Assembly (NCBI RefSeq): GCF_039654945.1
Contig: NW_027361699.1
Coordinates: 7,564,001 to 7,628,000 of the forward strand
Direction of reading: 5' to 3'
DNA from: Dendrobates tinctorius
Lineage: Eukaryota
DNA: 64,000 bases
In this document: positions 7,226 to 33,690 of the stretch, piece by piece
How positions within the stretch are numbered: position 1 is the first letter of the stretch
Layout of the letters: each line of letters begins with the position of its first letter
Program-made: the position numbers and the translations under genes
Notes under the pieces: model-generated
What the model was told of the DNA's origin: nothing
What the model saw: the letters and a program-made list of their open reading frames with translations, nothing else
Database searches by the model: none

Positions 7226-8934
7226 AAGTCAATGGCTGGATCCTGAAGAGCGAAACATTGTTGTTACGTAGTCATTGAATGGAGTGACGTTTATGCTCAC
7301 ATGACTTGTACAGTAGATCATTAAATTTTCATAAATACATTTGCACGGTAGGTTAAGCTAACCTTATATCAAACGTCTTCTCTTTTAAGCCAGTTTCCTT
7401 TACTTTCCAGAATTGACTTAATCAGGTAATGGCATTTAATAGGAAAACATATAAGAAGCTTTGAATTTCATCTCCCCTGTGCCGAGGACTGAGGAAGTAA
7501 TAATGGTTGTTTCTAACTAATAAAGTAAAGGCATGAGTTGGCTGCTGTATGAAAGTTCCAGATTTCTTTCTTACACAGCTACTTTTTGTAGTATTTAAGC
7601 CCTTTCATTTTTCTCATGAGCCTGTTTTGGAATATCAATAACTCGACACAATACACACACATTCAAATCTCATTTCCTAATGGGATTATCCAGAGCCACA
7701 AAAGGGTTTGTCTACAGAGGGGGAGAGCAAAAACGGATTACATTTCCAAAATCTTGTACCATTGCCTAAGTTCTGTCCATAAAGGTTTATAAAGCGCAAC
7801 TTTATGGGAAAAAGAAAACAGTGCTCAGCATTGTGTATTATGTTCAGCAAGAGAAACGACTCAGTGTCTGCATTTGCCTATAGAGGGTAGAGAAAATCAC
7901 TCTCTTAATTTCACATGCCATAGACAATAAGTGCCTCTCGTTCTCAAACTACCACACATTTAACCCCAGCTCAACCAAGGGGTCTTGAAGGGTCGGTGCA
8001 CTAGTGTAGAGATAGGCTTTTTGTCTCTACTCTACTTCCAATGCTGAGGTTAAAATTAAAGCAAAGAGAACATGACAGTCTGTCTCTTTCTTATTGTTCT
8101 CCGCTTGTTGCTAACAGTGAGTGGTGTTTAAAATAATGTCAGCTAGTGCCAAGCAATTCTGAAGAAGCTTTATATTGCATGCACTCAGCTGGAAGACAGA
8201 ATGACACATAGTAGAGATCTCATCTTGAAGATGTCAACATCTACTTTGCTCAATATGCCATGAATACTTTTAAAACAATAATCCTAAAACCACTGGATAA
8301 AAAAATTAACCTGGTGGTGCATGGCCATAAGCCAAAGGCAGCAGACACCTAACTCCCAAGGTCAGTAGTACCAGCCTAAATGAGCTTCAAAATAGTAACC
8401 ATCCACCACTTTATAGTGAGAAAGCGCTTGGGAAAGAGTCACTTACTCTGGTCATAAGCTTTGCTTGTGACATGGGCAACATTTTGGGGCCACCTGCATC
8501 ACGTCTGTCTCCAACCTCACTGCATCCACCATCACTCAATAACATACTCATCATTGCCCTCAGATCAGGACATCTCATCCTCCACTAGCTCCCTTAAACT
8601 TCCACACTTGTCCTAAGTTAATCCAGAGAGTAAAACTGTTCCAAGAGTCTGGGACCCGCAATCTTTAACACAGTGTTAGAAATTGAGCAGGAGCCACTAC
8701 TTTAGCACAGTTACCCTCATACGCACCAGAATAATGCCTCATCTTCTTCTCAAGAGGGTACTTGGAATCAGAGCCGGATTTAAGAGGTGGGTGACCCCTT
8801 AGGCCCCTATTTTGGTCGAAGGCCCATTTTTCAAGGTGTTGCAATATGTAATGCAAAAACACAAAATGAAACGAACACAAGTATATTTTCAAAAATCATT
8901 TACACAGAGTAATTCAGGTAAAATCATTCATGTT

Positions 8935-11875
8935 TTACAATCCAGGCACTTTCCTTGATTTTCGTGCTGCAAAATCACTAATAATGCCACTAAAGTCCAA
9001 TTCACGCAGTATATCTGACTCGATGCTCATGATAGCCAAATTTACAAGTCGTTCCTGCTTCATGGATTTCCTTAATCGATTTTCAACTAATTTGAGATTT
9101 GAGAAGGAACGCTCACCACTACAGTTTGTTACCATCAAAATTAGCTATATCCTTAACGCTATCTCAATATTTGGGAAAGTGACCTGCACACGCTTTTACA
9201 TGATAAGCTTGTACATGAAAAGTTCAGTGCTGATATATTTTGGCTCCTCGTCTGTGAATAAATTGGCAAATGTTGCAAACTGACACAGTTCATCAATAAA
9301 TGTAATGTCCAAGTCATCTGAATAAGACCTGACGAGTTGCTCTGCTGTGGCCTTAAGCTCATCTGAAGACAGTTCTTTCAAATGGCTAAAAAAAAGCTAA
9401 ATTTGCTTGATATATCTTTATATGCTTGAAGACATTGGTTAAGAGAAGCGATAAACTGATCAATGATAGGCAAGAAAGTTTCTGTTCTGTATTTTTCAGA
9501 AGGGCTGAGTTGTGCGTCTTCCGTATGGCCATAATCCAATGGATTGAGCCACACGTTTCGGCGCCTGTGTCGAGTTATCGCCTGAACATACTCAAAAGAA
9601 CCAGACAGCTCTTCGCCTTGCTTCTCATAAATTTTGAAGGAGTCACGCTTTGATGCGACATAGTTTTTTAAGCTGGTCAGTGACGCCACAGCAGTGTTTA
9701 GATCGAGTTTTGCGTGTTGTAGATTTTTACTAGTAGCATCTGTTCTTTGCAGGATTTTATTCCAGAAGGTGGTGTTAAAACCAATTTCAAGCTGATTCAT
9801 TTGTCTTAACAGTCCTTCTGCCTCACACCATACACAGCTTTTTTCTTCAAAGTCATCAGCAATCTGTTTAAGTACATGTTTAATCTGCTGATAGTCATGC
9901 TTAAGGGCCTTAGTAACGTCTGCTCTGCAGGACCAATGCGTTGTTGTGACACGATTGAGAGTCAATGCTGTTGCAGAGTCAATATTTTTCAAAGCCTCAG
10001 TCAGGAGATGATGCCTATGCATTGAAACTGTGAAGAAGAGGAACAGCTTTTCAAGGAAGTCAAAAAAATGTACAGCACTCGAGCAGCTTTCTACAGCATT
10101 TTTAGCAACCAGATTTAAAGAGAGTGCTGTACTAGGAATCCAGGATGCAAGATTTTTCTTCTCTCTCACTTTGGCTTGCAGGCCGTTGGATTTGCCACTC
10201 ATTGCAGATGCATTGTCATAACTTTGACCACGGCAATTTCCCAGGTCTAGGTCATGTCTCTTCAAAAATTCCAACAAGGCATTGAACATGTCTTGAGCGC
10301 CATGGCCTTTGTTTGCCATGAATGTTACAAGAGTTCTACAGGGCCATCTTTCTCCATATACCTCAATACAAGGGTTAGTTGGTCAACGTGAGCTGCATCG
10401 GGTGTGGAGTCCAAAGAGATGGAGTAGTATTTTGATTTGTTAACTCGAGAAATAATTTCTCTGAGGACTTGTTCGCCCATTACATTGATCATTTCTTCCA
10501 TAATTGTAGATAACAGGTAGTTTGTATGACCCTTGCCGCGATTGTCTTGAGTTTTGATATGCTGTGCAAGAAAGTCGTCGTACTGGGTGATGAGTTCAAG
10601 AATGCCCAGAAAGTTTCCATTTCTAGATGATCCATCCAATTCGTTATCTCCTCTAAATGCTACCAATCAGTAGATTTGGTTTCCAGTACCATCGCTATGC
10701 TGATGACACCCAATTATACGCTTCTTCTCCTGACATCACGCCAGCCTTTCTAGAAAACACCAGCGATTGTCTAAACGCTGTGTCTAACGTCATGTCCTCG
10801 CTATATCTGAAACTGAACCTGTCAAAGACTGAAGTCCTTGTGTTTCCTCCCTCTACTAATGTACCTATACCCGACATTGCCATTTCTGTGTGTGGTTTCA
10901 CTATTACTCCCCAGCAACATGCCCGCTGTATTGGGGTCATACTTGACTCCGAGCTTTCCTTTGCCCCCCACATTCGATCACTGGCTCGCTCTTGTCATCT
11001 GCACTTTAAAAACATTTCTAGAATTTGACCTTTTCTTACTTTTGACTCCACAAAAACTCTTACTGTTTCTCTTATTCATTCTCATCTCGACTATTGTAAC
11101 TCTCTTCTAATCGGCCTCCCTCTTACCAAACTCTCCCCTCTCCAATCTGTCTTGAATGCTGCAGCCAGGATCATATTCCTCACCAATCGTTACACCGATG
11201 CCTCTACCTTGTGCCAGTCATTACACTGGCTACCCATCCACTCAGTATAAACTTATTACCCTCACCCATAAAGCCCTCCATGGCTCAGCATCACCCTACA
11301 TCTCCTCCCTTGTTTCAGTATGCCACCCTACCCGCGCCCTCCGTTCTGGTGATGACCTGAGGTTAGCATCCTCAATAATCAGAACCTCCCACTCCCGTCT
11401 CCAAGACTTTACACGTGCTGCACCAATTCTTTGGAATGCACTTCCCAGGTCAATACGATTAGTCCCCAATCCCCACAGTTTTAAGCGTGCCCTGAAAACG
11501 CATTTATTCAGACTGGCCTACCGCTTCAACACATTAACCTAATCTATCCCTGTGTGGCACAGCCAAAAGTTTTACTATAACCAGTTTCCCCGCATCATGT
11601 TCCCACATGCTTTATGCATCCATTAGCCCTCTGTGTCTGTACTGTTACACACTTAACATTATGGCTGTTCCAAATAATCAGGGCAACTGTTACCACCCAC
11701 CTTTCATGTCTACCTCTTTCCTCATAGACTGTAAGCTTGCGAGCAGGGCCCTCATTCCTCTTGGTATTTGTTATAATCTATGTGATTATTGTTATGCTGT
11801 AATGTCTATTGTCTGTACAAATCCCCTCTGAAATGTAAAGTGCTGCGGAATGTGTCGGCGCTATAGAAATAAAAC

Positions 11876-11912
<37 letters not shown>

Positions 11913-12773
11913 GCCACACTCGGCAATAAACTGAATAACATTTACTACTCGTTTCAATGCTGACCTGACCTCCAATAATGCTCCTGAGCCTCGACCTGTT
12001 GTGTTAGCTCCGTATCAATTTGCCCAATCGCTTTTAACCTCATATTGAAAGCAATTGTAGAGTTCAGATGTTCCGATGACTTTTTATACAATCTTGTGAA
12101 TGTTTCCAACCACAGAATCCATTAGACGAAAGCTGAGAAGACTCAGATGCTGTAATAAAGCACATCAATTTGCACGTGAAGCAGTAAATGCGTCTTTAAA
12201 GGGAGAGAAGCATAACCAATTCCTCGTTATGACTTCTCCATTATGATTTTGACGACGGAAAAGCCCAAGTGTGCACATCCTTGGAATATTGCTGTCCTTT
12301 CTAGGTTGCTGAACCGAGTGTGCAATGAACAAACTTTCATCACAGTGCTGGATTGTTGATACACCCCTTTTCAGCCAGTAATCTCGCATCTGTTCCGAAA
12401 TCATGGATGGCCATAGTCCAATGTCATCGCCCCCTGGTGGGCCCTCATCTTTACCTTCTTCATAAGATGTGCCACTAGCAGTCTCCTTTTCTTTGTGTTC
12501 TTCAGTTGCACACATTACTACTTCAGCCTTTTCTTTGCCAGGATCAACAACCATTTCCACTGAAGCATTGTCAGGTTGATCAGATTCTACAAGGTCATTA
12601 CTCCTTTCCGACACTTGCCTTGAATGAACAGTGAAGAACTTGTCCAATTTTGTTGTCTTCGCTATCTCTTCTGTAGATTTCATTGTTGCTTCTTTTGCCT
12701 TACGTCTTTTAGAAGCCCCAGACTCCCAAATTCTTGTGGGATGTCTGTGCCTATCTCCTTCAAGATTGTCCAT
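8935..12773 (-). pseudogene. hAT transposase pseudogene, copy 1
   Basis: Fragments 12165..12773, ..CGL/AFRG..GNFL, SISLDSTPD (D), GQSYDNAS (D), TTHWS, and dimerisation domain NCSGERSFSNLK..ERL.NLA (E). Frameshifts, lost CxxH motif (PSTALSLNL), and an L2 insertion. Confidence 0.9.
10661..11909 (+). mobile_element. 5'-truncated L2-clade LINE inserted in hAT transposase (copy 1)
   Basis: HRYADDTQLY RT motif, LDYCNSLL, FKRALKTHLF. 3' end gcgctatagaaataaaa+(TTA)n. Splits hAT CGL|AFRG. Confidence 0.9.
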
Positions 12774-12884
12774 GATGGTAATCTAAAAGTAACAAAATGA
12801 CCTTGTCAAACCTTGAAGTCCTGAAAGGGAATTAAAGATAAAAATATGTACATATGTATGTATGTATGTATGTATATTGTAGAA

Positions 12885-13058
12885 ATTTGGGCTGTCTATA
12901 TCAAACACTGCTGCGGGGCTCTGTATGTCAGACACTGCTGCTGGGCTGTATAGTGTATGTATGAGAGGCTTTTGCTGGGCTGTATATGTATGAGAGGCTT
13001 CTGCTGGGCTGTATATATATGGGGTTGCTGCTGGGCTGTATATATATATATATATATC
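12885..13058. repeat. Minisatellite (gctgctgggctgtatata-like), continuing at 14668-14850
   Basis: Repeated gctgctgggctgtatat units on both sides of the Tc1 insertion. Confidence 0.7.
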
Positions 13059-13060
13059 TA

Positions 13061-14665
13061 CAGTGGGGCAAAAAAGTATTTAGTCAGTCAGCAATAGTGC
13101 AAGTTCCACCACTTAAAAAGATGAGAGGCGTCTGTAATTTACATCATAGGTAGACCTCAACTATGGGAGACAAACTGAGAAAAAAAAATCCAGAAAATCA
13201 CATTGTCTGTTTTTTTTTCATTTTATTTGCATATTATGGTGGAAAATAAGTATTTGGTCAGAAACAAAATTTCATCTCAATACTTTGTGATATATCCTTT
13301 GTTGGCAATGACAGAGGTCAAACGTTTTCTGTAAGTCTTCACAAGGTTGCCACACACTGTTGTTGGTATGTTGGCCCATTCCTCCATGCAGATCTCCTCT
13401 AGAGCAGTGATGTTTTTGGCTTTTCGCTTGGCAACACGGACTTTCAACTTCCTCCAAAGGTTTTCTATAGGGTTGAGATCTGGAGACTGGCTAGGCCACT
13501 CCAGGACCTTGAAATGCTTCTTACGAAGCCACTCCTTCGTTGCCCTGGCGGTGTGCTTTGGATCATTGTCATGTTGAAAGACCCAGCCACGTTTCATCAT
13601 CAATGCCCTTGCTGATGGAAGGAGGTTTGCACTCAAAATCTCACGATACATGGCCCCATTCATTCTTTCATGTACCCGGATCAGTCGTCCTGGCCCCTTT
13701 GCAGAGAAACAGCCCCAAAGCATGATGTTTCCACCACCATGCTTTACAGTAGGTATGGTGTTTGATGGATGCAACTCAGTATTCTTTTTCCTCCAAACAC
13801 GACAAGTTGTGTTTCTACCAAACAGTTCCAGTTTGGTTTCATCAGACCATAGGACATTCTCCCAAAACTCCTCTGGATCATCCAAATGCTCTCTAGCAAA
13901 CTTCAGACGGGCCCGGACATGTACAGGCTTAAGCAGTGGGACACGTCTGGCACTGCAGGATCTGAGTCCATGGTGGCGTAGTGTGTTACTTATGGTAGGC
14001 CTTGTTACATTGGTCCCAGCTCTCTGCAGTTCATTCACTAGGTCCCCCCGCGTGGTTCTGGGATTTTTGCACACCGTTCTTGTGATCATTCTGACCCCAC
14101 GGGGTGGGATTTTGCGTGGAGCACCAGATCGAGGGAGATTATCAGTGGTCTTGTATGTCTTCCATTTTCTAATTATTGCTCCCACAGTTGATTTCTTCAC
14201 TCCAAGCTGGTTGGCTATTGCAGATTCAGTCTTCCCAGCCTGGTGCAGGGCTACAATTTTGTTTCTGGTGTCCTTTGACAGCTCTTTGGTCTTCACCATA
14301 GTGGAGTTTGGAGTCAGACTGTTTGAGGGTGTGCACAGGTGTCTTTTTATACTGATAACAAGTTTAAACAGGTGCCATTACTACAGGTAATGAGTGGAGG
14401 AAAGAGGAGACTCTTAAAGAAGAAGTTACAGGTCTGTGAGAGCCAGAAATCTTGATTGCTTGTTTCTGACCAAATACTTATTTTCCACCATAATATGCAA
14501 ATAAAATGAAAAAAAACAGACAATGTGATTTTCTGGATTTTTTTTTCTCAGTTTGTCTCCCATAGTTGAGGTCTACCTATGATGTAAATTACAGACGCCT
14601 CTCATCTTTTTAAGTGGTGGAACTTGCACTATTGCTGACTGACTAAATACTTTTTTGCCCCACTG
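13061..14665 (-). mobile_element. Full-length Tc1/DD34E transposon (IR/DR type), copy A
   Basis: TA flanks. ~205-bp near-perfect TIRs starting cagtggggcaaaaaagtatttagtca, with inner direct repeat aataagtatttggtca. Confidence 0.97.
13277..14299 (-). CDS. Tc1 DD34E transposase, 340 aa (LWRKLK variant)
   Basis: Paired-like HTH N-terminus, GAPRK linker, [14 protein letters not shown], 34 residues to NPIE. Confidence 0.95.
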
Positions 14666-15226
14666 TATATATGAGGGGCTGCTGCTGGGCTGTATATATT
14701 AGAAGCTGCTGCTGGGCTAGTGGGCTGTATATATGTGGGGCTGCTGCCAGGCTGTAATATATCAGAGGCTGTTTACCTGGCTGTATATATCAGATGCTGT
14801 TGCTGTGCTGGCTGTATATAGAATAGACGTTGAGGGGCTGTATAAAGTGTATACACTGCACTATACTGTAAACAGGTCCACACTATATACATACAGTATA
14901 CACAGACACACTGTAATGCAGGATATAGTGTGGACCTGTATATACAGTATGGTACTGTGTAGGACAGGAGCTGCAAGAAAGATACACAGACAGACACACA
15001 CACACAGACAGACAGAGATCATACTCACCCACCGTGACACTGGGAAGACTGAACCACATCATTCTGGATCTTCAGTGACTGAAGATCCAGAGTGAAGTCC
15101 TGCCACGCTCCGCAGTGGAGAAACCTCTTCCCGTGCCGACATTGTGGCTCCGCCTCCTTCCTCGAAGGTAGCTGAACTGAACAAACTCTCATCTGATCTA
15201 ATCCAAGGGAGCGATATAGCTGAATA

Positions 15227-17515
15227 CAGTTAGGTCCATATATATTTGGACAGAGACAACATTTTTCTAATTTTGGTTCTAGACATTACCACAATGAATT
15301 TTAAACAAAACAATTCAGATGCAGTTGAAGCTCAGACTTTCAGCTTTCATTTGAGGGTATCCACATTAAAATTGGATGAAGGGTTTAGGAGTTTCAGCTC
15401 CTTAACATGTGCCACCCTGTTTTTAAAGGGACCAAAAGTAATTTGACAGATTAAATAATTGTAAATAAAATGTTCATTTCTAGTATTTGGCTGAAAACCC
15501 TTTGTTGGCAATGACTGCCTGAAGTCTTGAACTCATGGACATCACCAGACGCTGTGTTTCCTCCTTTTTGATGCTCTGCCAGGCCTTCACTGCGGTGGTT
15601 TTCAGTTGTTGTTTGTTTGTGGGCCTTTCTGTCTGAAGTTTAGTCTTTAACAAGTGAAATGTGTCATGATCCAGGACGGGGTTTCGCTTTGGCCCGTCCT
15701 GGTCAGACAGGGGGTTAATTGTTTCTGCCTCTCTCTGGCAGAGGGCGGCTATTTAATGCTCACTGGACCTGGGTCTGGTGTCAGTTATACTACTGCCCTC
15801 GGCTGAGTTAGGTGACCTCTTGTATACGTGTGCCTTGTGCCTGATAACTTGTTGCTTGTTTGGTTGTGATCTGGTTCTGTCCCTGTTACGAGTTCTGCCT
15901 GACCCTCTTGTACCGCACCGTCCTCTTGTGTATGACCCTCTGCTTGTTACTCAACTGCTCTCTGCTCGGCCCTTTTGTACCACACCGCCCTCTTGAGTAT
16001 GACCTTTGGCTTCGTCTGACCTCCCATCTGCTTGTCCCTCCTGTACCTCGTTCGCCTGTATTGTGTATGATCTCTGGTTTGCCCGACTCTGAGTGTTCTT
16101 CCATCTCAGTAAGCAGGATGCTAAGCCCCGCCCCCTTGAGGTCACATGACCGTAGGTCCCGTGCCTGCTTGCTAATACTTCAGCGTTCAGGTCCTGTGCG
16201 TCTGTACTTTCCAGCTGTTACTGTCCCCGGGACCCCTACAGCACTGGTGAGTCCCTGCTCAGCGAGGGCTGTACGCCGGCGCTGTCAGGATCCTGACAAA
16301 ATGCATGCTCAATAGGGTTGAGATCAGGTGACTGACTTGGCCATTCAAGAATATTCCACTTCTTTGCTTTAATAAACTCCTGGGTTGCTTTGGCTTTATG
16401 TTTTGGGTCATTGTCCATCTGTAGTATGAAACGACGACCAATCAGTTTGGCTGCATTTGGCTGGATCTGAGCACACAGTATGACTCTGAATACCTCAGAA
16501 TTCATTCGGCTGCTTCTGTCCTGTGTCACATCATCAATAAACACTAGTGACCCATTGCCACTGGCAGCCATGCATGCCCAAGCCATCACACTGCCTCCGC
16601 TGTGTTTTACAGATGATGTGGTATGCTTTGGATCATGAGCTGTACCACGCCTTCGCCATACTTTTCTCTTTCCATCATTCTGGTAGAGGTTGATCTTGGT
16701 TTCATCTGTCCAAAGAATGTTCTTCCAGAACTGTGTTGGCTTTTTTAGATTTTTTTAGCAAAGTCCAGTCTAGCCTTTTTATTCTTGATGCTTATGAGTG
16801 GCTTGCACCGTGCAGTGAACCCTCTGTATTTACTTTCATTCAGTCTTCTCTTAATGGTAGATTTGGATATTGATATGCCTACCTCCTGGAGAGTGTTGTT
16901 CACTTGGTTGGCTGTTGTGATGGGGTTTCTCTTCACCGTGGAGATTATTCTGCGATCATCCACCACTGTTGTCTTCCGTGGGCGCCCAGGTCTTTTTGCA
17001 TTGATGAGTTCACCAGTGCTTTCTTTCTTTCTTAGGATGTACCAAACTGTAGATTTTGCCACTCCTAATGTTGTAGCAATTTCTCAGATGGGTTTTTTCT
17101 GTTTTTGCAGCTTAAGGATGGCTTGTTTCACCTGCATGGAGAGCTCCTTTGACCGAATGTTTCCTTCACAGCAAAACCTTCCAAATACAAGCACCACACC
17201 TCAAATCAACTCCAGGTCTTTTATCTGCTTAATTGAGAATGATATAACAAAGGGATTTCCCACACTTGTCCATGAAATAGCCTTGGAGTCAATTGTCCAA
17301 TTACTTTTTGTCCCTTTAAAAACTGGTTGGCTCATGTTAAGGAGCTGAAACTCCCAAACCCTTCATCCAATTTTAATGTGGATACCCTCAAATGAAAGCT
17401 GAAAGTCTGAACTTCAACTGCATCTGAATTGTTTTGTTTAAAATTCATTGTCGTAATGTCTAGAACTAAAATTAGAAAAATGTTGTCTCTGTCAAAATAT
17501 ATATGGACCTAACTG
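15227..17515 (-). mobile_element. Second Tc1 family element (frameshifted) nested in hAT copy 1
   Basis: TA-flanked ~210-bp TIRs cagttaggtccatatatattt. Fragments [23 protein letters not shown]. Confidence 0.92.
15662..16298. mobile_element. Solo LTR (637 bp) inserted in Tc1
   Basis: TG..CA ends tgtcatgatcc / ggatcctgaca. 5-bp TSD AAATG. Interrupts the transposase after NPIEH. Confidence 0.88.
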
Positions 17516-17962
17516 TAGGTAGCGCGGAGCGCCTAAAAGCTTCTGTTTAGGACCTGAGAAGGCTGCAGCATGCCATAAGCTAAGCATTAGGTACAGGTAC
17601 TAAGGAAGTCTGGCTAGCCAGGTCAGTGGATGCTGACGCAGGTGCCACGACTCTGCCATTCTGCACCACCCACTGAGATGTAGGCCCGTAGCCAGGTCCC
17701 TACACTTTCAATAGTTTCTCTTTTGCTTCTTATCCTTAGAAACGGTTCACAGCAAAGAGAGACGTGTATTTTACATGTTTTGAGATATTTATCCCCATAT
17801 TGTGGGAGGCCCCCACTTGGTGGGTGGCCCAGGCCCCTTGGGCCCCCCTAAATCTGGGCCTGCTTGGAATACAAACCTGCCTCAACAGCTGGCAGTCCCC
17901 TCCCCAATGAAAGCACAACCTATGTTTACAGAAATTTACTGCCAATCATCAAGAAAACATTA

Positions 17963-21501: not shown

Positions 21502-22852
21502 TTAGTCATCTGAATAAGACCTGACGAGTTGCTCTGCTGTGGCCTTAAGCTCATCTGAAGACAGTTCTTTCAAATGGCTAAAAAAAAGCTAAATTTGCTT
21601 GATATATCTTTATATGCTTGAAGACATTGGTTAAGAGAAGCGATAAACTGATCAATGATAGGCAAGAAAGTTTCTGTTCTGTATTTTTCAGAAGGGCTGA
21701 GTTGTGCGTCTTCCGTATGGCCATAATCCAATGGATTGAGCCACACGTTTCGGCGCCTGTGTCGAGTTATCGCCTGAACATACTCAAAAGAACCAGACAG
21801 CTCTTCGCCTTGCTTCTCATAAATTTTGAAGGAGTCACGCTTTGATGCGACATAGTTTTTTAAGCTGGTCAGTGACGCCACAGCAGTGTTTAGATCGAGT
21901 TTTGCGTGTTGTAGATTTTTACTAGTAGCATCTGTTCTTTGCAGGATTTTATTCCAGAAGGTGGTGTTAAAACCAATTTCAAGCTGATTCATTTGTCTTA
22001 ACAGTCCTTCTGCCTCACACCATACACAGCTTTTTTCTTCAAAGTCATCAGCAATCTGTTTAAGTACATGTTTAATCTGCTGATAGTCATGCTTAAGGGC
22101 CTTAGTAACGTCTGCTCTGCAGGACCAATGCGTTGTTGTGACACGATTGAGAGTCAATGCTGTTGCAGAGTCAATATTTTTCAAAGCCTCAGTCAGGAGA
22201 TGATGCCTATGCATTGAAACTGTGAAGAAGAGGAACAGCTTTTCAAGGAAGTCAAAAAAATGTACAGCACTCGAGCAGCTTTCTACAGCATTTTTAGCAA
22301 CCAGATTTAAAGAGAGTGCTGTACTAGGAATCCAGGATGCAAGATTTTTCTTCTCTCTCACTTTGGCTTGCAGGTCGTTGGATTTGCCACTCATTGCAGA
22401 TGCATTGTCATAACTTTGACCACGGCAATTTCCCAGGTCTAGGTCATGTCTCTTCAAAAATTCCAACAAGGCATTGAACATGTCTTGAGCGCCATGGCCT
22501 TTGTTTGCCATGAATGTTACAAGAGTTCTACAGGGCCATCTTTCTCCATATACCTCAATACAAGGGTTAGTTGGTCAACGTGAGCTGCATTGGGTGTGGA
22601 GTCCAAAGAGATGGAGTAGTGTTTTGATTTGTTAACTCGAGAAATAATTTCTCTGAGGACTTGTTCGCCCATTACATTGATCATTTCTTCCATAATTGTA
22701 GATAACAGGTAGTTTGTATGACCCTTGCCGCGATTGTCTTGAGTTTTGATATGCTGTGCAAGAAAGTCGTCGTACTGGGTGATGAGTTCAAGAATGCCCA
22801 GAAAGTTTCCATTTCTAGATGATCCATCCAATTCGTTATCTCCTCTAAATGC

Positions 22853-24067
22853 TACCAATCAGTAGATTTGGTTTCCAGTACCATCGCTATGCTGATGACA
22901 CCCAATTATACGCTTCTTCTCCTGACATCACACCAGCCTTTCTAGAAAACACCAGCGATTGTCTAAACGCTGTGTCTAACATCATGTCCTCGCTATATCT
23001 GAAACTGAACCTGTCAAAGACTGAAGTCCTTGTGTTTCCTCCCTCTTCTAATGTACCTATACCCGACATTGCCATTTCTGTGTGTGGTTTCACTATTACT
23101 CCCCAGCAACATGCCTGCTGTATTGGGGTCATACTTGACTCCGAGCTTTCCTTTGCTCCCGACATTCGATCACTGGCTCGCTCTTGTCATCTGCACTTTA
23201 AAAACATTTCTAGAATTTGACCTTTTCTTACTTTTGACTCCACAAAAACTCTTACTGTTTCTCTTATTCATTCTCATCTCGACTATTGTAACTCTCTTCT
23301 AATCGGCCTCCCTCTTACCAAACTCTCCCCTCTCCAATCTGTCTTGAATGCTGCAGCCAGGATCATATTCCTCACCAATCGTTACACCGATGCCTCTACC
23401 TTGTGCCAGTCATTACACTGGCTACCCATCCACTCAGTATAAACTTATTACCCTCACCCATAAAGCCCTCCATGGCTCAGCATCACCCTACATCTCCTCC
23501 CTTGTTTCAGTATGCCACCCTACCCGCGCCCTCCGTTCTGGTGATGACCTGAGGTTAGCATCCTCAATAATCAGAACCTCCCACTCCCGTCTCCAAGACT
23601 TTACACGTGCTGCGCCAATTCTTTGGAATGCACTTCCCAGGTCAATACGATTAGTCCCCAATCCCCACAGTTTTAAGCGTGCCCTGAAAACGCATTTATT
23701 CAGACTGGCCTACCGCTTCAACACATTAACCTAATCTATCCCTGTGTGGCACAGCCAAAAGTTTTACTATAACCAGTTTCCCCGCATCATGTTCCCACAT
23801 GCTTTATGCATCCATTAGCCCTCTGTGTCTGTACTGTTACACACTTAACATTATGGCTGGTCCAAATAATCAGGGCAACTGTTACCACCCACCTTTCGTG
23901 TCTACCTCTTTCCTCATAGACTGTAAGCTTGCGAGCAGGGCCCTCATTCCTCTTGGTATTTGTTATAATCTATGTGATTATTGTTATGCTGTAATGTCTA
24001 TTGTCTGTACAAATCCCCTCTGAAATGTAAAGTGCTGCGGAATGTGTCGGCGCTATAGAAATAAAAC

Positions 24068-24095
<28 letters not shown>
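22853..24095 (+). mobile_element. L2 LINE fragment, copy 2
   Basis: Duplicate of 10661-11909, with YADD motif and (TTA)n tail. Confidence 0.9.
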
Positions 24096-24098
<3 letters not shown>

Positions 24099-25244
24099 GC
24101 CACACTCGGCAATAAACTGAATAACATTTACTACTCGTTTCAATGCTGACCTGACCTCCAATAATGCTCCTGAGCCTCGACCTGTTGTGTTAGCTCCGTA
24201 TCAATTTGCCCAATCGCTTTTAACCTCATATTGAAAGCAATTGTAGAGTTCAGATGTTCCGATGACTTTTTATACAATCTTGTGAATGTTTCCAACCACA
24301 GAATCCATTAGACGAAAGCTGAGAAGACTCAGATGCTGTAATAAAGCACATCAATTTGCACGTGAAGCAGTAAATGCGTCTTTAGAGGGAGAGAAGCATA
24401 ACCAATTCCTCGTTATGACTTCTCCATTATGATTTTGACGACGGAAAAGCCCAAGTGTGCACATCCTTGGAATATTGCTGTCCTTTCTAGGTTGCTGAAC
24501 CGAGTGTGCAATGAACAAACTTTCATCACAGTGCTGGATTGTTGATACACCCCTTTTCAGCCAGTAATCTCGCATCTGTTCCGAAATCATGGATGGCCAT
24601 AGTCCAATGTCATCGCCCCCTGGTGGGCCCTCATCTTTACCTTCTTCATAAGATGTGCCACTAGCAGTCTCCTTTTCTTTGTGTTCTTCAGTTGCACACA
24701 TTACTACTTCAGCCTTTTCTTTGCCAGGATCAACAACCATTTCCACTGAAGCATTGTCAGGTTGATCAGATTCTACAAGGTCATTACTCCTTTCCGACAC
24801 TTGCCTTGAATGAACAGTAAAGAACTTGTCCAATTTTGTTGTCTTCGCTATCTCTTCTGTAGATTTCATTGTTGCTTCTTTTGCCTTACGTCTTTTAGAA
24901 GCCCCAGACTCCCAAATTCTTGTGGGATGTCTGTGCCTATCTCCTTCAAGATTGTCCATGATGGTAATCTAAAAGTAACAAAATGACCTTGTCAAACCTT
25001 GAAGTCCTGAAAGGGAATTAAAGATAAAAATATGTACATATGTATGTATGTATGTATATTGTAGAAATTTGGGCTGTCTATATCAAACACTGCTGCGGGG
25101 CTCTGTATGTCAGACACTGCTGCTGGGCTGTATAGTGTATGTATGAGAGGCTTTTGCTGGGCTGTATATGTATGAGAGGCTTCTGCTGGGCTGTATATAT
25201 ATGGGGTTGCTGCTGGGCTGTATATATATATATATATATATCTA

Positions 25245-26848
25245 CAGTGGGGCAAAAAAGTATTTAGTCAGTCAGCAATAGTGCAAGTTCCACCACTTAA
25301 AAAGATGAGAGGCGTCTGTAATTTACATCATAGGTAGACCTCAACTATGGGAGACAAACTGAGAAAAAAAAATCCAGAAAATCACATTGTCTGTTTTTTT
25401 TCATTTTATTTGCATATTATGGTGGAAAATAAGTATTTGGTCAGAAACAAAATTTCATCTCAATACTTTGTGATATATCCTTTGTTGGCAATGACAGAGG
25501 TCAAACGTTTTCTGTAAGTCTTCACAAGGTTGCCACACACTGTTGTTGGTATGTTGGCCCATTCCTCCATGCAGATCTCCTCTAGAGCAGTGATGTTTTT
25601 GGCTTTTCGCTTGGCAACACGGACTTTCAACTCCCTCCAAAGGTTTTCTATAGGGTTGAGATCTGGAGACTGGCTAGGCCACTCCAGGACCTTGAAATGC
25701 TTCTTACGAAGCCACTCCTTCGTTGCCCTGGCGGTGTGCTTTGGATCATTGTCATGTTGAAAGACCCAGCCACGTTTCATCATCAATGCCCTTGCTGATG
25801 GAAGGAGGTTTGCACTCAAAATCTCACGATACATGGCCCCATTCATTCTTTCATGTACCCGGATCAGTCGTCCTGGCCCCTTTGCAGAGAAACAGCCCCA
25901 AAGCATGATGTTTCCACCACCATGCTTTACAGTAGGTATGGTGTTTGATGGATGCAACTCAGTATTCTTTTTCCTCCAAACACGACAAGTTGTGTTTCTA
26001 CCAAACAGTTCCAGTTTGGTTTCATCAGACCATAGGACATTCTCCCAAAACTCCTCTGGATCATCCAAATGCTCTCTAGCAAACTTCAGACGGGCCCGGA
26101 CATGTACAGGCTTAAGCAGTGGGACACGTCTGGCACTGCAGGATCTGAGTCCATGGTGGCGTAGTGTGTTACTTATGGTAGGCCTTGTTACATTGGTCCC
26201 AGCTCTCTGCAGTTCATTCACTAGGTCCCCCCGCGTGGTTCTGGGATTTTTGCACACCGTTCTTGTGATCATTCTGACCCCACGGGGTGGGATTTTGCGT
26301 GGAGCACCAGATCGAGGGAGATTATCAGTGGTCTTGTATGTCTTCCATTTTCTAATTATTGCTCCCACAGTTGATTTCTTCACTCCAAGCTGGTTGGCTA
26401 TTGCAGATTCAGTCTTCCCAGCCTGGTGCAGGGCTACAATTTTGTTTCTGGTGTCCTTTGACAGCTCTTTGGTCTTCACCATAGTGGAGTTTGGAGTCAG
26501 ACTGTTTGAGGGTGTGCACAGGTGTCTTTTTATACTGATAACAAGTTTAAACAGGTGCCATTACTACAGGTAATGAGTGGAGGAAAGAGGAGACTCTTAA
26601 AGAAGAAGTTACAGGTCTGTGAGAGCCAGAAATCTTGATTGCTTGTTTCTGACCAAATACTTATTTTCCACCATAATATGCAAATAAAATGAAAAAAAAC
26701 AGACAATGTGATTTTCTGGATTTTTTTTTCTCAGTTTGTCTCCCATAGTTGAGGTCTACCTATGATGTAAATTACAGACGCCTCTCATCTTTTTAAGTGG
26801 TGGAACTTGCACTATTGCTGACTGACTAAATACTTTTTTGCCCCACTG
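25245..26848 (-). mobile_element. Full-length Tc1/DD34E transposon, copy B
   Basis: TA flanks, ~205-bp TIRs; duplicate of 13061-14665. Confidence 0.97.
25460..26482 (-). CDS. Tc1 DD34E transposase, 340 aa, apparently intact
   Basis: Open ORF with all motifs canonical ([29 protein letters not shown]). Confidence 0.96.
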
Positions 26849-27409
26849 TATATATGAGGGGCTGCTGCTGGGCTGTATATATTAGAAGCTGCTGCTGGGC
26901 TAGTGGGCTGTATATATGTGGGGCTGCTGCCAGGCTGTAATATATCAGAGGCTGTTTACCTGGCTGTATATATCAGATGCTGTTGCTGTGCTGGCTGTAT
27001 ATAGAATAGACGCTGAGGGGCTGTATAAAGTGTATACACTGCACTATACTGTAAACAGGTCCACACTATATACATACAGTATACACAGACACACTGTAAT
27101 GCAGGATATAGTGTGGACCTGTATATACAGTATGGTACTGTGTAGGACAGGAGCTGCAAGAAAGATACACAGACAGACACACACACACAGACAGACAGAG
27201 ATCATACTCACCCACCGTGACACTGGGAAGACTGAACCACATCATTCTGGATCTTCAGTGACTGAAGATCCAGAGTGAAGTCCTGCCACGCTCCGCAGTG
27301 GAGAAACCTCTTCCCGTGCCGACATTGTGGCTCCGCCTCCTTCCTCGAAGGTAGCTGAACTGAACAAACTCTCATCTGATCTAATCCAAGGGAGCGATAT
27401 AGCTGAATA

Positions 27410-29698
27410 CAGTTAGGTCCATATATATTTGGACAGAGACAACATTTTTCTAATTTTGGTTCTAGACATTACCACAATGAATTTTAAACAAAACAATTCA
27501 GATGCAGTTGAAGCTCAGACTTTCAGCTTTCATTTGAGGGTATCCACATTAAAATTGGATGAAGGGTTTAGGAGTTTCAGCTCCTTAACATGTGCCACCC
27601 TGTTTTTAAAGGGACCAAAAGTAATTTGACAGATTAAATAATTGTAAATAAAATGTTCATTTCTAGTATTTGGCTGAAAACCCTTTGTTGGCAATGACTG
27701 CCTGAAGTCTTGAACTCATGGACATCACCAGACGCTGTGTTTCCTCCTTTTTGATGCTCTGCCAGGCCTTCACTGCGGTGGTTTTCAGTTGTTATTTGTT
27801 TGTGGGCCTTTCTGTCTGAAGTTTAGTCTTTAACAAGTGAAATGTGTCATGATCCAGGACGGGGTTTCGCTTTGGCCCGTCCTGGTCAGACAGGGGGTTA
27901 ATTGTTTCTGCCTCTCTCTGGCAGAGGGCGGCTATTTAATGCTCACTGGACCTGGGTCTGGTGTCAGTTATACTCCTGCCCTCGGCTGAGTTAAGTGACC
28001 TCTTGTATACGTGTGCCTTGTGCCTGATAACTTGTTGCTTGTTTGGTTGTGATCTGGTTCTGTCCCTGTTACGAGTTCTGCCTGACCCTCTTGTACCGCA
28101 CCGTCCTCTTGTGTATGACCCTCTGCTTGTTACTCAACTGCTCTCTGCTCGGCCCTTTTGTACCACACCGCCCTCTTGAGTATGACCTTTGGCTTCGTCT
28201 GACCTCCCATCTGCTTGTCCCTCCTGTACCTCGTTCGCCTGTATTGTGTATGATCTCTGGTTTGCCCGACTCTGAGTGTTCTTCCATCTCAGTAAGCAGG
28301 CTGCTAAGCCCCGCCCCCTTGTGGTCACATGACCGTAGGTCCCGTGCCTGCTTGCTAATACTTCAGCGTTCAGGTCCTGTGCGTCTGTACTTTCCAGCTG
28401 TTACTGTCCCCGGGACCCCTACAGCACTGGTGAGTCCATGCTCAGCGAGGGCTGTACGCCGGCGCTGTCAGGATCCTGACAAAATGCATGCTCAATAGGG
28501 TTGAGATCAGGTGACTGACTTGGCCATTCAAGAATATTCCACTTCTTTGCTTTAATAAACTCCTGGGTTGCTTTGGCTTTATGTTTTGGGTCATTGTCCA
28601 TCTGTAGTATGAAACGACGACCAATCAGTTTGGCTGCATTTGGCTGGATCTGAGCACACAGTATGACTCTGAATACCTCAGAATTCATTCGGCTGCTTCT
28701 GTCCTGTGTCACATCATCAATAAACACTAGTGACCCATTGCCACTGGCAGCCATGCATGCCCAAGCCATCACACTGCCTCCGCTGTGTTTTACAGATGAT
28801 GTGGTATGCATTGGATCATGAGCTGTACCACGCCTTCGCCATACTTTTCTCTTTCCATCATTCTGGTAGAGGTTGATCTTGGTTTCATCTGTCCAAAGAA
28901 TGTTCTTCCAGAACTGTGTTGGCTTTTTTAGATTTTTTTAGCAAAGTCCAGTCTAGCCTTTTTATTCTTGATGCTTATGAGTGGCTTGCACCGTGCAGTG
29001 AACCCTCTGTATTTACTTTCATTCAGTCTTCTCTTAATGGTAGATTTGGATATTGATACGCCTACCTCCTGGAGAGTGTTGTTCACTTGGTTGGCTGTTG
29101 TGATGGGGTTTCTCTTCACCGTGGAGATTATTCTGCGATCATCCACCACTGTTGTCTTCCGTGGGCGCCCAGGTCTTTTTGCATTGATGAGTTCACCAGT
29201 GCTTTCTTTCTTTCTCAGGATGTACCAAACTGTAGATTTTGCCACTCCTAATGTTGTAGCAATTTCTCAGATGGGTTTTTTCTGTTTTTGCAGCTTAAGT
29301 ATGGCTTGTTTCACCTGCATGGAGAGCTCCTTTGACCGAATGTTTCCTTCACAGCAAAACCTTGCAAATACAAGCACCACACCTCAAATCAACTCCAGGT
29401 CTTTTATCTGCTTAATTGAGAATGATATAACAAAGGGATTTCCCACACTTGTCCATGAAATAGCCTTGGAGTCAATTGTCCAATTACTTTTTGTCCCTTT
29501 AAAAACAGGTTGGCTCATGTTAAGGAGCTGAAACTCCCAAACCCTTCATCCAATTTTAATGTGGATACCCTCAAATGAAAGCTGAAAGTCTGAACTTCAA
29601 CTGCATCTGAATTGTTTTGTTTAAAATTCATTGTCGTAATGTCTAGAACTAAAATTAGAAAAATGTTGTCTCTGTCAAAATATATATGGACCTAACTG
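27410..29698 (-). mobile_element. Second Tc1 family element, copy 2
   Basis: Duplicate of 15227-17515. Confidence 0.92.
27845..28481. mobile_element. Solo LTR, copy 2
   Basis: Duplicate of 15662-16298, TSD AAATG. Confidence 0.88.
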
Positions 29699-30145
29699 TA
29701 GGTAGCGCGGAGCGCCTAGAAGCTTCTGTTTAGGACCTGAGAAGGCTGCAGCATGCCATAAGCTAAGCATTAGGTACAGGTACTAAGGAAGTCTGGCTAG
29801 CCAGGTCAGTGGATGCTGACGCAGGTGCCACGACTCTGCCATTCTGCACCACCCACTGAGATGTAGGCCCGTAGCCAGGTCCCTACACTTTCAATAGTTT
29901 CTCTTTTGCTTCTTATCCTTAGAAACGATTCACAGCAAAGAGAGACGTGTATTTTACATGTTTTGAGATATTTATCCCCATATTGTGGGAGGCCCCCACT
30001 TGGTGGGTGGCCCAGGCCCCTTGGGCCCCCCTAAATCTGGGCCTGCTTGGAATACAAACCTGCCTCAACAGCTGGCAGTCCCCTCCCCAATGAAAGCACA
30101 ACCTATGTTTACAGAAATTTACTGCCAATCATCAAGAAAACATTA

Positions 30146-32533
30146 CAGCATTTGAAATAATTTTTGAAGATGTCACCAATTTTCTAAGTAAATATATTTC
30201 TACAGGTACAATTGACATTAAATTTTCACCAGATGTCATTAACAACCCATCCAAATTCAAACAGGCAAAAATATCAAACCATAAATGTCCATAAATTAAG
30301 TTATGTATAATAATGAGAAATGGCATGAGGAAAAAGTATTGCACACAGAAAGAAAGAGAGTTGAAAAAAGTCATGGAAAGTCATGACATCAGCTGAAATC
30401 TATCAGCAATTAGAAAGCAATCCAGCCACTTAGTGAAAAATAATGCTGGTTCAACTAATGGCGTATAAAAAGGCATCTCATTACTAAGGTGTCACACAAG
30501 AAACTTCTAATAATGGGTAAAACTACAGACCTTCTCAACCTCATTGTTGAAAAAATATACTGATGGCACTGATCCAGAAGAATTTCTAAACTACTGAAGA
30601 TTCCAGTGAGCAATGTTGGGCCATAATCCAGAAGTGGAAAGAACACTATTTAATTATACACCCGTCACGACCAGGTGCTCCCTCACACAGAAGAGGGAAA
30701 ATAATTATCAAGAGTTATCCGAGAACCAAAGACCACCTGTGGAGAGCTACAGAAAGACCTAGAATCATCAGGTAGAATTGTTTCAAAGAAAACACATTCA
30801 CTCAATTTCTATGCCCTGTATGCACACAGACCATGCAAGACTCCATTGCTGAACAAAAAGCATTATCAAGCGTGTTTAAAGTTTGCTATACAACATTTAG
30901 ACAATACTGTGAAATACTGGGAGACTATAATATTGTCAGATGAGATCAAAAGTAAACTCTTTGGATGTCATAATGCACACCATGTTTGGAGGCCAAAAGG
31001 CACTGAATATCACCTGTTATGATGAGTCACCGAAGGAGGAAAAAACAAAATACCAGCTAAGTCCAGAAAAACCAGAGAGGTTGGCAGCTATCGGATTGCA
31101 GACCCCTGAACCTATCCACAACAACTAGCAGTAGCCGTGGGGGGTTCCTACGGTGCCCTAGACCCCTCGATCACAGCCGAAGAGCTACATAGCCTAAAGA
31201 CAGAAAGGGGGAAAAACTAAACTGCCCCAGAGCAGACCCCAAAGCAATAGGCAGCCCCCAACATATAATGACGATGAAGCAAGATGAAAACACTAACGCA
31301 GATAGAAAGATAGGTTGAGCAAATGATGGGGCCCAAGCTAACTACATAGGACAGGATAGGAAAGCCGCTGTCTGCCATCCACAAAAACACTATCAAAATG
31401 AGCCAACCGACTGATAGGAAAAACAGGCCCTGAAGTCGCTAGGCTTCAAAAGACTATATCAGCACTCAGGTATATTCTGCAGACAGAGCAAAAGATCAAC
31501 AGATCAGAGACAAAAATGGAATTCAGCTCACCCCCGGCCGGGGATGGCAGAACTCCCAAAAAACAAGGCAAAACAAAAACAAAACTGAAGAGTACAAAGC
31601 AGAGCAGAAAAACTTAGCTTTGAGACGCAGGAATCAGACTGGTCTCCAAGAATCCAGCAGGAAAATCACCAGCCAGGAAGAAGGGCGTCGGCAGCCTTAT
31701 ATCCGGTCCTCAATTCCAGCCACCCAGTTATCATCTAGCTGCCCAGGTGTTTGGTAATCAGTCTCACTACCTTCCTTCACCAGAGGAGGGAGTTCATCAG
31801 ACCTCAATGGTGAAGGGAAAAATGAATTCACAACAATCACCCCAATTACACCATACAAACAGTGAAGTTTGGATTGGGGGGGTGTGGGGCTCTTTTTCAT
31901 CAAACATCACTGGCAAACTTCATATAATTGAAGGAAGGATAAATGGATAAATGTACAGAGATATTCTTGATAAAAATCTGCTACCATCTACCAGGATGAT
32001 GACGATGAAACAAGGGTGGACATTTCAGCAAGACAATGATCCCAAACACACAGCCAAGGAAACACTGACTTGGTTTCAGAAAAAGAAAATAAAACTGCTA
32101 GAATGGCCCAGCCAATCACCTGACCTGAATCCCATAGAAAATTTATGGCGGGAACTAAAGCTCAGAGTTCATAGAAGGAGCCCATGGAAACTTCAGGATT
32201 TGAAGTGATTGTGTGGAAAAATGGGAAAATATCACACCTGAACAATGCAACTAACTTCTCCATACAGGAGATGTCTTGAAGCTGTCCTCACCAAAAAAGG
32301 CTTTTGTACAAAGTATTAAATAAACTTCAGTATGTGTGTTCAATAATTTTTCCTTGTGTCATTTCTCATTATTACACATAACTTAATTTATTTACATTGA
32401 TGGTTTGATATATTTGTCTGTGTGGATTTGATGAGTCGTTACCAACATCTGGTGATAATTTCATGGCAATAGCACCTTTAGAAATATATTTACTTAGAAA
32501 ATAGGTGATGTGTTCAATACTTATTACCCGCTG
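30146..32533 (+). mobile_element. Degenerate Tc1 (third family), unit 2
   Basis: Duplicate of 17963-20347. Confidence 0.85.
31015..31835. mobile_element. Solo LTR, unit 2
   Basis: Duplicate of 18832-19649. Confidence 0.8.
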
Positions 32534-33690
32534 TATATTGGAAAACTCAGAGTGTGTTTAAAGAGATATGGTTCTACATGAAAGGCTTCCTCACCAACCT
32601 TTCCCCCCCCAAAAAAAAACAGATGTTCAATGACCAATCACGCAGTTGAGAATTAATATGGACTATTAAGAAAAAACACAAATTTTGTGTTCAAGCAGAA
32701 GCTTCAGCCCCTGTTCTACATCTTCATCTCAATATCAGCAAATTCTGCCCCATCACATACTGTGTGCCCTGAATATTGAAAAAGTAAAAAAATATATAAA
32801 TATTAAATAAAAACACTCTGTGCCTTCCTTTTTCCATACCAGTTCCAGTGATGTCGGCAACGGTTCTTCCAAGGCTGACGTGACATTTCTATGCCACACG
32901 AGATCTGCAACCAATCAGTGGCTGCTAATGGGCTGCTATGCTCTCAATTCCTTTGTGAATTCAAGGTTTGTTGAAATGAAGTGAAAGCATAACAGAAAAC
33001 AGATCAATAAAAGCCACTATTGTCACTTGAGCTTCGGGAAACCCGGTGTCATACAAGAGGTGAGGAGGTCTGTATGAAAAAGAAGTAAAACATAAAAAAG
33101 TATATATTTGATATAAACCTAACCATATCAATTAGCAAATAAAGATAACATGTCATTGATATTGTACTGCACGGAGAACTCTGTAAAACTCCGTAAAACA
33201 AAAAATTTTAAAACAATTCTTAATGTTTTTTGTTTATGCCTACTCTCAAAAAAAGAATTAAGCAGTGTTGAAAAATTAAAATGTACCCAAAATATGGTCT
33301 GTAAAAACTACAGCTTGTTCCACAAAAAACAAGCTTTCATACAGCATGGGTATCATAATTTTTAGTGAAAAGTAGCAAAATATAAAAAAATTTGGTGTTG
33401 GCGTAATCGTTTCATCCCACAGAATAACAAAAATGTGACAGTTATACATAGCGATGAATGGTGCGTTGAAGTAAATAAACAAAAGAAATAACTACTGTTT
33501 TTTGTTCATTTTGCCTCCCAAAGAGTTAATGAAAAGTGATCGAAAATGCATATGTGCCACAAAACAGCACCACTGAAAACTACACTTCGCCACACAAAAA
33601 CAAAGTCCTCATACAGCTCTGCTGATAAAAAAAATATATGTTCCAGACCGGCCCTGGTCTCACTCTGGTTTGCTGCAGTCCCACAGCCGT

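Follow-up and report, generated by a model that had tools for sequence, protein, structure and literature searches.

Within a 64-kb window of Dendrobates tinctorius contig NW_027361699.1 (the window being the whole stretch of DNA that was analysed), a segment of about 12 kb is present in exactly two head-to-tail copies with no spacer separating them, and the terminus of a hAT transposon is the precise first base of both. This tandem duplication of 11.8 kb is real and young: the two copies differ by 44 substitutions over 11,770 bases (0.37%), by small indels, and by one 409-bp element in copy 2. The two breakpoints share a 5-bp microhomology, ATCAG. With a probability of about 0.5, we favour a microhomology-mediated duplication that abuts the hAT end by chance; the odds of a transposase role of any kind we put at about one in three. 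One case is not enough to decide between these mechanisms, and taken alone the locus counts as no more than a candidate for transposase-made duplication.

Structure of the duplicated segment

The locus has the layout A-[hAT]-B-[hAT]-B-C (Table 1), as the first-pass annotation had proposed. The two copies align in two blocks, 8767–9312 with 20549–21094 (99.8% identity) and 9312–20553 with 21504–32738 (99.5% identity), and their limits are exact to the base. The range assigned to the duplication in that annotation, 8761–32738, takes in the CAG of the microhomology at its end; the end based on the TIR is 32735. Also in agreement with the annotation, copy 2 begins at the first TIR base, 20551, directly after the last 8 bp of B, CTCAATAT, which is found at 20543–20550 and again at 32728–32735.

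The element at 8769–17862 is a genuine member of the hAT superfamily, with an 8-bp TSD, short TIRs and a C-terminal dimerisation domain. The matched TSDs claimed for copy 1 are present, with CTTGGAAT at 8761–8768 and 17863–17870 identical at 8/8 positions. The same 8-mer occurs again at 30046–30053, and the second (middle) hAT has just this one TSD in common with the first. The left end, CAGAGCCGGATTTAAGAGG, has just two occurrences in the window, at 8769 and at 20551, and it shares 14/19 positions with the right end at 17862; both ends start with CAG. The transposase gene of copy 1 lies on the minus strand in two parts, 12804–11910 and 10662–8938; nested insertions and two frameshifts interrupt it. 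The 3' end of the element, distal to the transposase, lies at 8769. The Dimer_Tnp_hAT domain was recognized at the cut-off score (21.4 bits) in the ORF at 8935–9138, and DUF4371 in the ORF at 10325–10666. The transposase remnants are 80–94% identical to P0001, which carries DUF4371 and hAT dimerisation domains. Relatives of this transposase are labelled DUF4371 and PF27073 (FAM200-ZBED5 RNase-like), which are names of Buster type, and these domain labels suggest Buster-type kin. Searches of solved structures with the ORFs and with P0001 yielded no relative, and no solved structure matched in sequence at E values up to 10.

The intact Tc1 that had been described as cargo is indeed carried by both copies of the duplication, in each case with an open 340-aa ORF containing the full domain set; a third Tc1 copy, 98.9% identical, is located at 49136–50748. 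Because the 409-bp element is found only in copy 2, where it divides the transposase remnant, this difference arose after the duplication, either by insertion into copy 2 or by excision from copy 1.

Table 1 Features of the duplicated locus and of neighbouring hAT-type elements (positions in the window)
Feature	Positions	Strand	Details
Upstream hAT-like element, different family	3674–6227	+	TSD ATTGGAGC; TIR 11/14
Left TSD of hAT copy 1	8761–8768	+	CTTGGAAT; last two bases, AT, belong to the ATCAG microhomology (8767–8771)
hAT copy 1	8769–17862	-	9,094 bp; left end CAGAGCCGGATTTAAGAGG
Duplication copy 1	8769–20550		11,782 bp; TIR-based definition
Nested insertion with reverse-transcriptase fragment	10663–11909	+	Divides the transposase gene; missing from the arthropod-associated relative L001
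Nested Tc1	13054–14672	-	214-nt TIRs; open 340-aa transposase ORF; copy 2 equivalent 25238–26855
Nested Tc1/mariner-like element	15225–17517	.	TIRs of 224 nt that are 96% alike; in copy 2 at 27408–29700
Right TSD of hAT copy 1	17863–17870	+	CTTGGAAT
Flank B, copy 1	17871–20550	+	2,680 bp; mostly an old Tc1-like element (about 17973–20348); ends in CTCAATAT
Duplication junction	20549–20553	+	ATCAG, common to left breakpoint (8767–8771) and right breakpoint (32734–32738)
hAT copy 2	20551–30045	-	Bordered on the left by the end of B instead of a TSD of its own; right flank CTTGGAAT, 30046–30053
Duplication copy 2	20551–32735		12,185 bp; TIR-based definition
TIR-bounded 409-bp element	21095–21503	.	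Copy 2 only; divides the transposase remnant
Flank B, copy 2	30054–32735	+	The original junction of B with C comes next, with CAG at 32736–32738
Lone hAT-type left end	33640–33656	-	CAGGGCCGGTCTGGAAC, flanked by GTCTCACT; 921 bp beyond the right breakpoint
Related hAT-type element	42770–45266	+	TSD TTTGTTAC on both sides; same left/right end asymmetry

Junction sequence and candidate partner ends

Alignment of the breakpoints (GGAAT/CAGAGCC and ATAT/CAGCAAA) upholds the 5-bp ATCAG microhomology that had been noted across the junction, with no filler. Among 200,000 random breakpoint pairs from the window, 0.62% had a microhomology of at least 5 bp. The breakpoints share nothing longer than 5 bp, and neither the tail of B nor the start of C has a further copy elsewhere in the window.

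The first-pass annotation had also treated the 8-mer preceding copy 2 as a hAT target site, on the grounds that CTTGGAAT, CTCAATAT and TTTGTTAC (the TSD of the element at 42770) all conform to nTnnnnAn. All three do, but the argument carries less weight than this agreement implies. A7 of the junction 8-mer lies inside ATCAG, so the fit of CTCAATAT is largely forced and adds almost nothing; T2 alone is independent of the microhomology, and its chance is 32%. Moreover, the target rule of Buster-type hAT elements is nnnTAnnn. Given relatives with Buster-type labels, the Ac/Hermes rule is an assumption for the duplicated hAT, and an Ac-type rule may be inapplicable to it. CTTGGAAT, the sole true TSD of its family at hand, fits nTnnnnAn and not the Buster rule.

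Published alternative transposition requires a second terminus. The right end at 6227 faces the left end of the duplicated hAT over 2.5 kb, which is the geometry required for a reversed-ends event. It is the sole upstream candidate and belongs to another family, matching the right end of the duplicated hAT at 5/12 positions, which weakens the argument for a transposase. No terminus of the same family was found in positions 1–8768, either with 2–3 mismatches allowed or with blastn-short. On the other side, the lone left end at 33640–33656 is a possible partner in a sister-chromatid model. The element at 42770–45266 matches the duplicated hAT at 9/10 bases of the left end and has an identical right-end 12-mer; judged by these ends, the left/right asymmetry is a feature of the family and not the result of decay.

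Origin of the duplication

Repair and replication template switching typically leave a short microhomology. In the microhomology-mediated duplication that we favour, a free 3' end within the ATCAG that straddles the left border of the hAT would pair with the sister chromatid at the ATCAG 11.8 kb farther downstream, and extension of the paired end would copy the hAT and 2.7 kb of flank a second time; the position of the break at a transposon end would be a coincidence. We infer both the pathway of repair and the cause of the break, and we consider the chances about even that the breakpoints were joined by repair through microhomology or by replication template switching and not by transposase strand transfer. 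The observations that argue for this reading are the 5 bp without filler at a chance of 0.62%, the absence of any longer homology at the breakpoints, the lack of a same-family partner terminus in the 8.7 kb upstream, the broken transposase gene of the hAT copy, and an nTnnnnAn fit that is mostly a product of the microhomology. Of the proximal repair-mediated duplications in hominid genomes, 31/39 carried microhomology of 2–9 nt (Pace et al. 2009, PMC2671141). The exact position of the breakpoint argues against it. Intact DNA-transposon ends occur about once per 2–5 kb in the window, and a breakpoint exactly at one of them would be expected in roughly 0.25–0.5% of duplications, with both breakpoints combined and six microhomology-allowed positions counted, which makes chance abutment itself unlikely. 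In addition, the layout equals the published signature of reversed-ends transposition.

Both the terminal-base breakpoint and a microhomology that includes the terminal CAG are covered by one reading only, in which a transposase makes the break and repair makes the join. Transposases of the hAT superfamily cut at the terminal CAG or one base outside it, as established for Hermes. Acting in trans, such an enzyme would nick or cut the hAT at its left end alone, a replication fork or processing would turn the cut into a one-ended break beginning at (T)CAG, and this end would anneal to the next (A)TCAG available on the sister chromatid and prime the copying of B, the hAT and beyond. The intact ends and TSDs of the hAT are consistent with this course of events, as are the family-wide rather than decay-related asymmetry of the ends and a transposase reading frame that is just lightly damaged. 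We nevertheless regard it as rather unlikely: it would need, like alternative transposition, a family that was active at a per-lineage divergence of about 0.2%, for which direct evidence is lacking, the normal hAT reaction pairs two ends and does not cleave one alone, and a break with 9 kb of perfect homology on the sister would as a rule be mended faithfully. Furthermore, AT, two of the five microhomology bases, lies outside the element, so the match would still be partly due to chance.

Alternative transposition proper, in which strand transfer by the transposase makes the join, could take three forms: the right end at 6227 would pair with the left end at 8769 and insert at CTCAATAT on the sister chromatid (reversed ends); 8769 would pair with the lone end at 33656, with loss of a 0.9-kb circle (sister-chromatid transposition); or strand transfer would be one-ended. 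Worked through on paper, each of these yields A-[hAT]-B-[hAT]-B-C. Two copies that start at the first base of the hAT, with matched TSDs at the first and a single one at the second, constitute the published signature; the junction 8-mer agrees with nTnnnnAn, as do two true TSDs, and candidate partner ends are available at 6227 and 33656 in the required orientations. However, strand transfer predicts no microhomology, yet 5 bp are present at the junction, and even if A7 is granted to the target rule, the coincidence of T8 and CAG has a probability of about 0.3–0.6%. The partner ends come from other families, the one at 33656 being a second left-type end, and the kin of the duplicated hAT look Buster-like. 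The prior is low as well, with 3 such cases among 7,611 hAT insertions in maize. We therefore consider the three forms together improbable. The same low credence applies to the specific scenario of a hAT transposase that acted in trans on the insertion-laden 9-kb element in the frog germline, by reversed-ends or sister-chromatid transposition, with an open Tc1 as cargo. Of the trans-acting origin proposed at first pass, the structural premise is right, in that the layout matches the maize signature; the microhomology, the forced A7, the Buster-type labels and the lack of an upstream end of the same family make the case for it weaker than it was put. The reciprocal allele predicted with it, [hAT]-CTCAATAT-C, does not belong to these forms but to single-element sister-chromatid transposition (left end on one chromatid, right end on the other), whose geometry gives A-B-[hAT]-B-C and A-[hAT]-C; the former is not the layout observed, and this model was rejected.

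Three other readings were discarded. Unequal homologous recombination is excluded because there is no long repeat at the breakpoints. A composite [hAT+B] that hopped beside itself does not agree with the flanks, as neither copy is bordered as a unit by an 8-bp duplication and the end of B has no TIR-like CTG. An old hAT end at the start of C would explain the CAG and the 8-mer, but the matching TSD and second end were not found. As for an assembly artefact, two haplotypes of one locus could have been placed end to end, or a real heterozygous duplication could be represented by this haplotype alone; 0.37% divergence and one 409-bp insertion polymorphism are within the allelic range. This is very improbable, given that the window contains no N and the joint at 20550/20551 no gap, that the end of copy 1 and the start of copy 2 are base-exact without overlap or filler, and that a false join at an arbitrary place would have to combine two coincidences, that of the microhomology (0.6%) and that of the transposon end (0.25–0.5%).

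Relation to known duplication systems

A literature search found no natural vertebrate case of a reversed-ends or sister-chromatid duplication made by a transposase; if the frog duplication was made in this way, it would apparently be the first. If transposases generate tandem duplications in the germline of vertebrates, some of the copy-number change and segmental duplication in genomes rich in transposons would be enzymatic in origin and could be looked for as such, with giant-genome frogs as an obvious example. Such a search needs two controls, as the published signature can coincide with the mark of ordinary repair at the same junction, and an apparent target-site fit may be a by-product of microhomology.

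Hybrid element insertion by P elements depends on an active transposase and on two complementary ends that belong to one family. The frog element is of a different superfamily, and for its locus both would have to be assumed. In Drosophila, P-element ends on different chromatids are paired, giving rise to deletions as well as duplications with their limits at element termini (reviewed in PMC3744419).

The reversed-ends duplications of maize, which are 8 kb to 5.3 Mb long when formed de novo, are called by their layout, with matched TSDs at the first element and one shared TSD at the second, and three were found among 7,611 hAT insertions (Zhang, Zuo and Peterson, PMC3744419). The frog locus resembles them in its two head-to-tail copies, both of which begin exactly with a hAT, in a size inside the reported range, and in having a first element with matched 8-bp TSDs and a middle element sharing one. 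It differs in the facing terminus of another family, the 5 bp of junction microhomology and the vertebrate host, whereas the de novo maize events came from a proven pair of same-family termini, and for one of them the reciprocal deletion was also recovered and its TSD matched (PMC3744419). The re-replication and composite insertions of maize, in which alternative transposition is coupled to replication and break repair, offer another parallel: re-replicated segments are flanked by transposon termini, with the other joint made by repair. Composite insertions are bounded by transposon termini on both sides, whereas in the frog one joint is both terminus and microhomology site (Zhang et al. 2014, PMC4270019).

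In comparison with the repair-mediated duplications of Pace et al. 2009, which reach 619 bp, the frog duplication is far longer at 11.8 kb, and one of its breakpoints falls on a transposon terminus (PMC2671141). It shares with them, and with FoSTeS/MMBIR events, a local character, short microhomology (2–9 nt in theirs) and breakpoints without a long repeat (PMC2671141).

Organization of the duplication and its hAT element

A repeat scan and blastn of the region against itself revealed two head-to-tail copies (8767–9312 versus 20549–21094, 99.8% identity; 9312–20553 versus 21504–32738, 99.5% identity) in a window with zero N. With the copy limits set by the first base of hAT, global alignment of the copies yielded 44 substitutions in 11,770 aligned bases (0.37%; 27 transitions, 10 at CpG), a few 1–6-bp indels, and a 409/410-bp block present in copy 2 only. 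The first-pass annotation had described a tandem duplication starting exactly at a hAT end, and each copy indeed aligns from the element's first base; the duplication is real, but the proposed span to 32738 included the CAG of the junction microhomology. Between copies, the nested Tc1 (13054–14672 versus 25238–26855) shows 1 substitution in 1,619 bp, with ~6 expected at the overall rate (Poisson p ~0.02), and the first 1.4 kb of both copies is also near-identical. Both observations may be explained by gene conversion between copy 1 and copy 2.

Coordinates of the duplication and of elements in the window
Feature	Position	Strand	Details
hAT-like element	3674–6227		perfect 8-bp TSD ATTGGAGC; TIR 11/14
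Copy 1	8769–20550
Duplicated hAT (copy 1)	8769–17862
hAT dimerisation domain	8935–9138	minus	scoring at the domain's cut-off
DUF4371	10325–10666	minus
Transposase gene	12804–11910 + 10662–8935	minus	from DNA comparison with the P0001-encoding contig
Nested Tc1	13054–14672		open 340-aa ORF
Nested Tc1-like element	15225–17517		224-nt TIRs, 96% alike
Copy 2	20551–32735
409-bp element	21095–21503		16-nt inverted ends (AAAGGSSSTTTTACAY)
Lone left-type hAT end	33656		921 bp past the right breakpoint
hAT-type MITE	36780–37225		446 bp; TSD ATATAGAG; TIRs 11/12 matching (CAGGTGTGGGGA / CAGGGGTGGGGA)
hAT relative	42770–45266		TSD TTTGTTAC at both sides
Large inverted repeat	48488–56406		arms 48488–52796 and 54102–56406, 95–98% complementary; looks like a head-to-head retroelement pair
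Third Tc1 copy	49136–50748		in the left arm of the inverted repeat
Reverse-transcriptase ORF	52830–54782		650 aa; spacer into the right arm
CTG+CTCAATAT	63270–63280	minus	exact 11-mer

The duplicated element is a genuine hAT whose gene is broken but whose ends and TSDs are intact on either side, as its TSDs, TIRs, transposase remnants and nested insertions attest. The matched TSDs reported for copy 1 were recovered (CTTGGAAT on both sides, and again after the second element, at 30046), as was the insertion-riddled body with its Tc1 cargo. The left end, CAGAGCCGGATTTAAGAGG, occurs at 8769 and 20551 only, and the right end (17862) resembles it at 14 of 19 positions. This mismatch is not decay: the relative at 42770–45266 has a left end alike at 9/10 bases and an identical right-end 12-mer. 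The best relative of a 313-aa ORF of the element is P0001 (80% identity), a 512-aa protein carrying DUF4371 and the hAT dimerisation domain; by tblastn, its residues 1–512 align over 10480–8938 with two frameshifts. A 1.25-kb insertion that carries a fragment of a reverse transcriptase interrupts the gene, and the junction end (8769) is the transposase-distal end of the element. The frog hAT (8935–12804, and copy 2) is also 84–88% identical in DNA over ~2.7 kb to positions 332–2922 of L001, a contig of a crab-labelled metagenome assembly (Meta.Cpag.2018), and its protein shares 75–80% identity with proteins from Penaeus, Macrobrachium, Palaemon and a sea spider. The family is a candidate for horizontal transfer between arthropods and frog.

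Compared with the 0.37% between the duplication copies, the nested Tc1 diverges from its third copy by 1.1%, and the two TIRs of the Tc1-like element nested in the same hAT are 4% apart. These insertions need not have been made at the present locus; the laden hAT may have arrived as one unit, so that its ends would be less 'dead' than was first assumed. The 409-bp element is a change later than the duplication. It lacks a clear target duplication, and the 'empty' copy-1 site (9311–9312) has one A above what precise removal would leave; the element could have inserted into copy 2, or could have been excised from copy 1 and left a footprint there.

Junction sequence and target-site pattern

The left breakpoint reads GGAAT/CAGAGCC, the right ATAT/CAGCAAA, and the new joint ATAT/CAGAGCC. 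Five bases, ATCAG, are common to both breakpoints, and crossover is therefore possible at any of six positions. This microhomology, already noted at first pass, is uncommon by chance: at least 5 bp is shared by 0.62% of 200,000 random breakpoint pairs drawn from the window's unduplicated part. The exact match to CTG+CTCAATAT, 30 kb from the right breakpoint (~0.03 expected per window), is treated as chance, and no connection to the duplication is made.

The first-pass annotation had also read an Ac/Hermes-type target pattern, nTnnnnAn, in the junction 8-mer (the last 8 bp of the duplicated right flank), a pattern matched by 8.7% of all 8-mers here. Because the microhomology includes A7 and T8 of the 8-mer at the junction, and T2, the sole independent position, has a 32% chance of matching, the fit adds almost nothing to the transposase case. 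Whether the Ac rule applies to this family is itself in doubt, because relatives of the transposase bear DUF4371 and FAM200-ZBED5-type labels. FAM200 and ZBED5 are Buster-derived genes. The Buster target rule is nnnTAnnn, and Tip, the third hAT group, was without a known rule. The sole true TSD of the duplicated element does fit the Ac rule and departs from the Buster one, but a single site (n = 1) proves nothing.

Partner ends and competing origins

Two Ac termini that face each other can insert together into a sister chromatid, and in the maize product each copy begins with the element, the first keeping its TSDs and the middle one sharing one only; by this signature, three old cases were recognised in a set of 7,611 maize hAT insertions (Zhang, Zuo and Peterson, PMC3744419). 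The frog locus shows the same arrangement, with both copies starting with hAT and TSDs matched on the first only. Under this model another terminus must face the end at the junction, and no same-family hAT end was found in 1–8768. A scan for 8-bp direct repeats adjoining inverted termini identified the element at 3674–6227, whose right end points towards 8769 from 2.5 kb away; this end and the right end of the duplicated hAT are alike at only 5 of 12 positions, and the element is of another family. Like the duplicated element, it has GC-rich subterminal regions that contain GGGCCCC motifs. The lone end at 33656 would permit a sister-chromatid variant with a small circle lost, one that pairs two left-type ends. 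The window holds ~1 hAT-like end per 5 kb, so neighbouring ends at such distances are expected by chance. By our working-through, a single-element sister-chromatid event yields A-B-[hAT]-B-C (A, left flank; B, duplicated right flank; C, DNA beyond), and the reciprocal deletion allele first proposed belongs to that event; it is therefore not tied to the observed A-[hAT]-B-[hAT]-B-C.

We give a probability of about one half to a break at random, which microhomology repair would then have joined. Such a break would place one of its two breakpoints within 6 positions of an intact DNA-transposon end with a chance of ~0.25–0.5%, based on the transposon ends countable in the window. This coincidence and that of the microhomology roughly cancel, and therefore priors decide; microhomology is a common mark of vertebrate local duplications (31 of 39 proximal cases; PMC2671141). 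Both coincidences would be disposed of if transposase cut or nicked the end and repair then used the terminal CAG, an explanation we rate as less probable than the random break, as it relies on single-end cleavage and on an enzyme active at the right time, both assumed. It is unlikely that transposase strand transfer made the join itself, as in true alternative transposition: despite the maize-like structure, this leaves the microhomology to chance (~0.3–0.6% even with A7 granted to the target rule), invokes a signature rare even in maize, and has no same-family partner end in 1–8768. The trans-acting transposase of the first-pass annotation keeps the maize signature in its favour, against the microhomology at the join, an almost uninformative target fit and a facing end of another family only. 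We rate it very improbable that the assembly was falsely joined at an arbitrary point, because both coincidences would be needed at once and the joint is gap-free; other explanations take the remainder.

A single locus cannot establish a transposase origin. If that origin holds, the case would be a first for vertebrates, since no vertebrate example of hAT-mediated tandem duplication was found in the literature searched. Both readings are of known kinds: microhomology-mediated tandem duplication, or hAT-mediated duplication as in maize.
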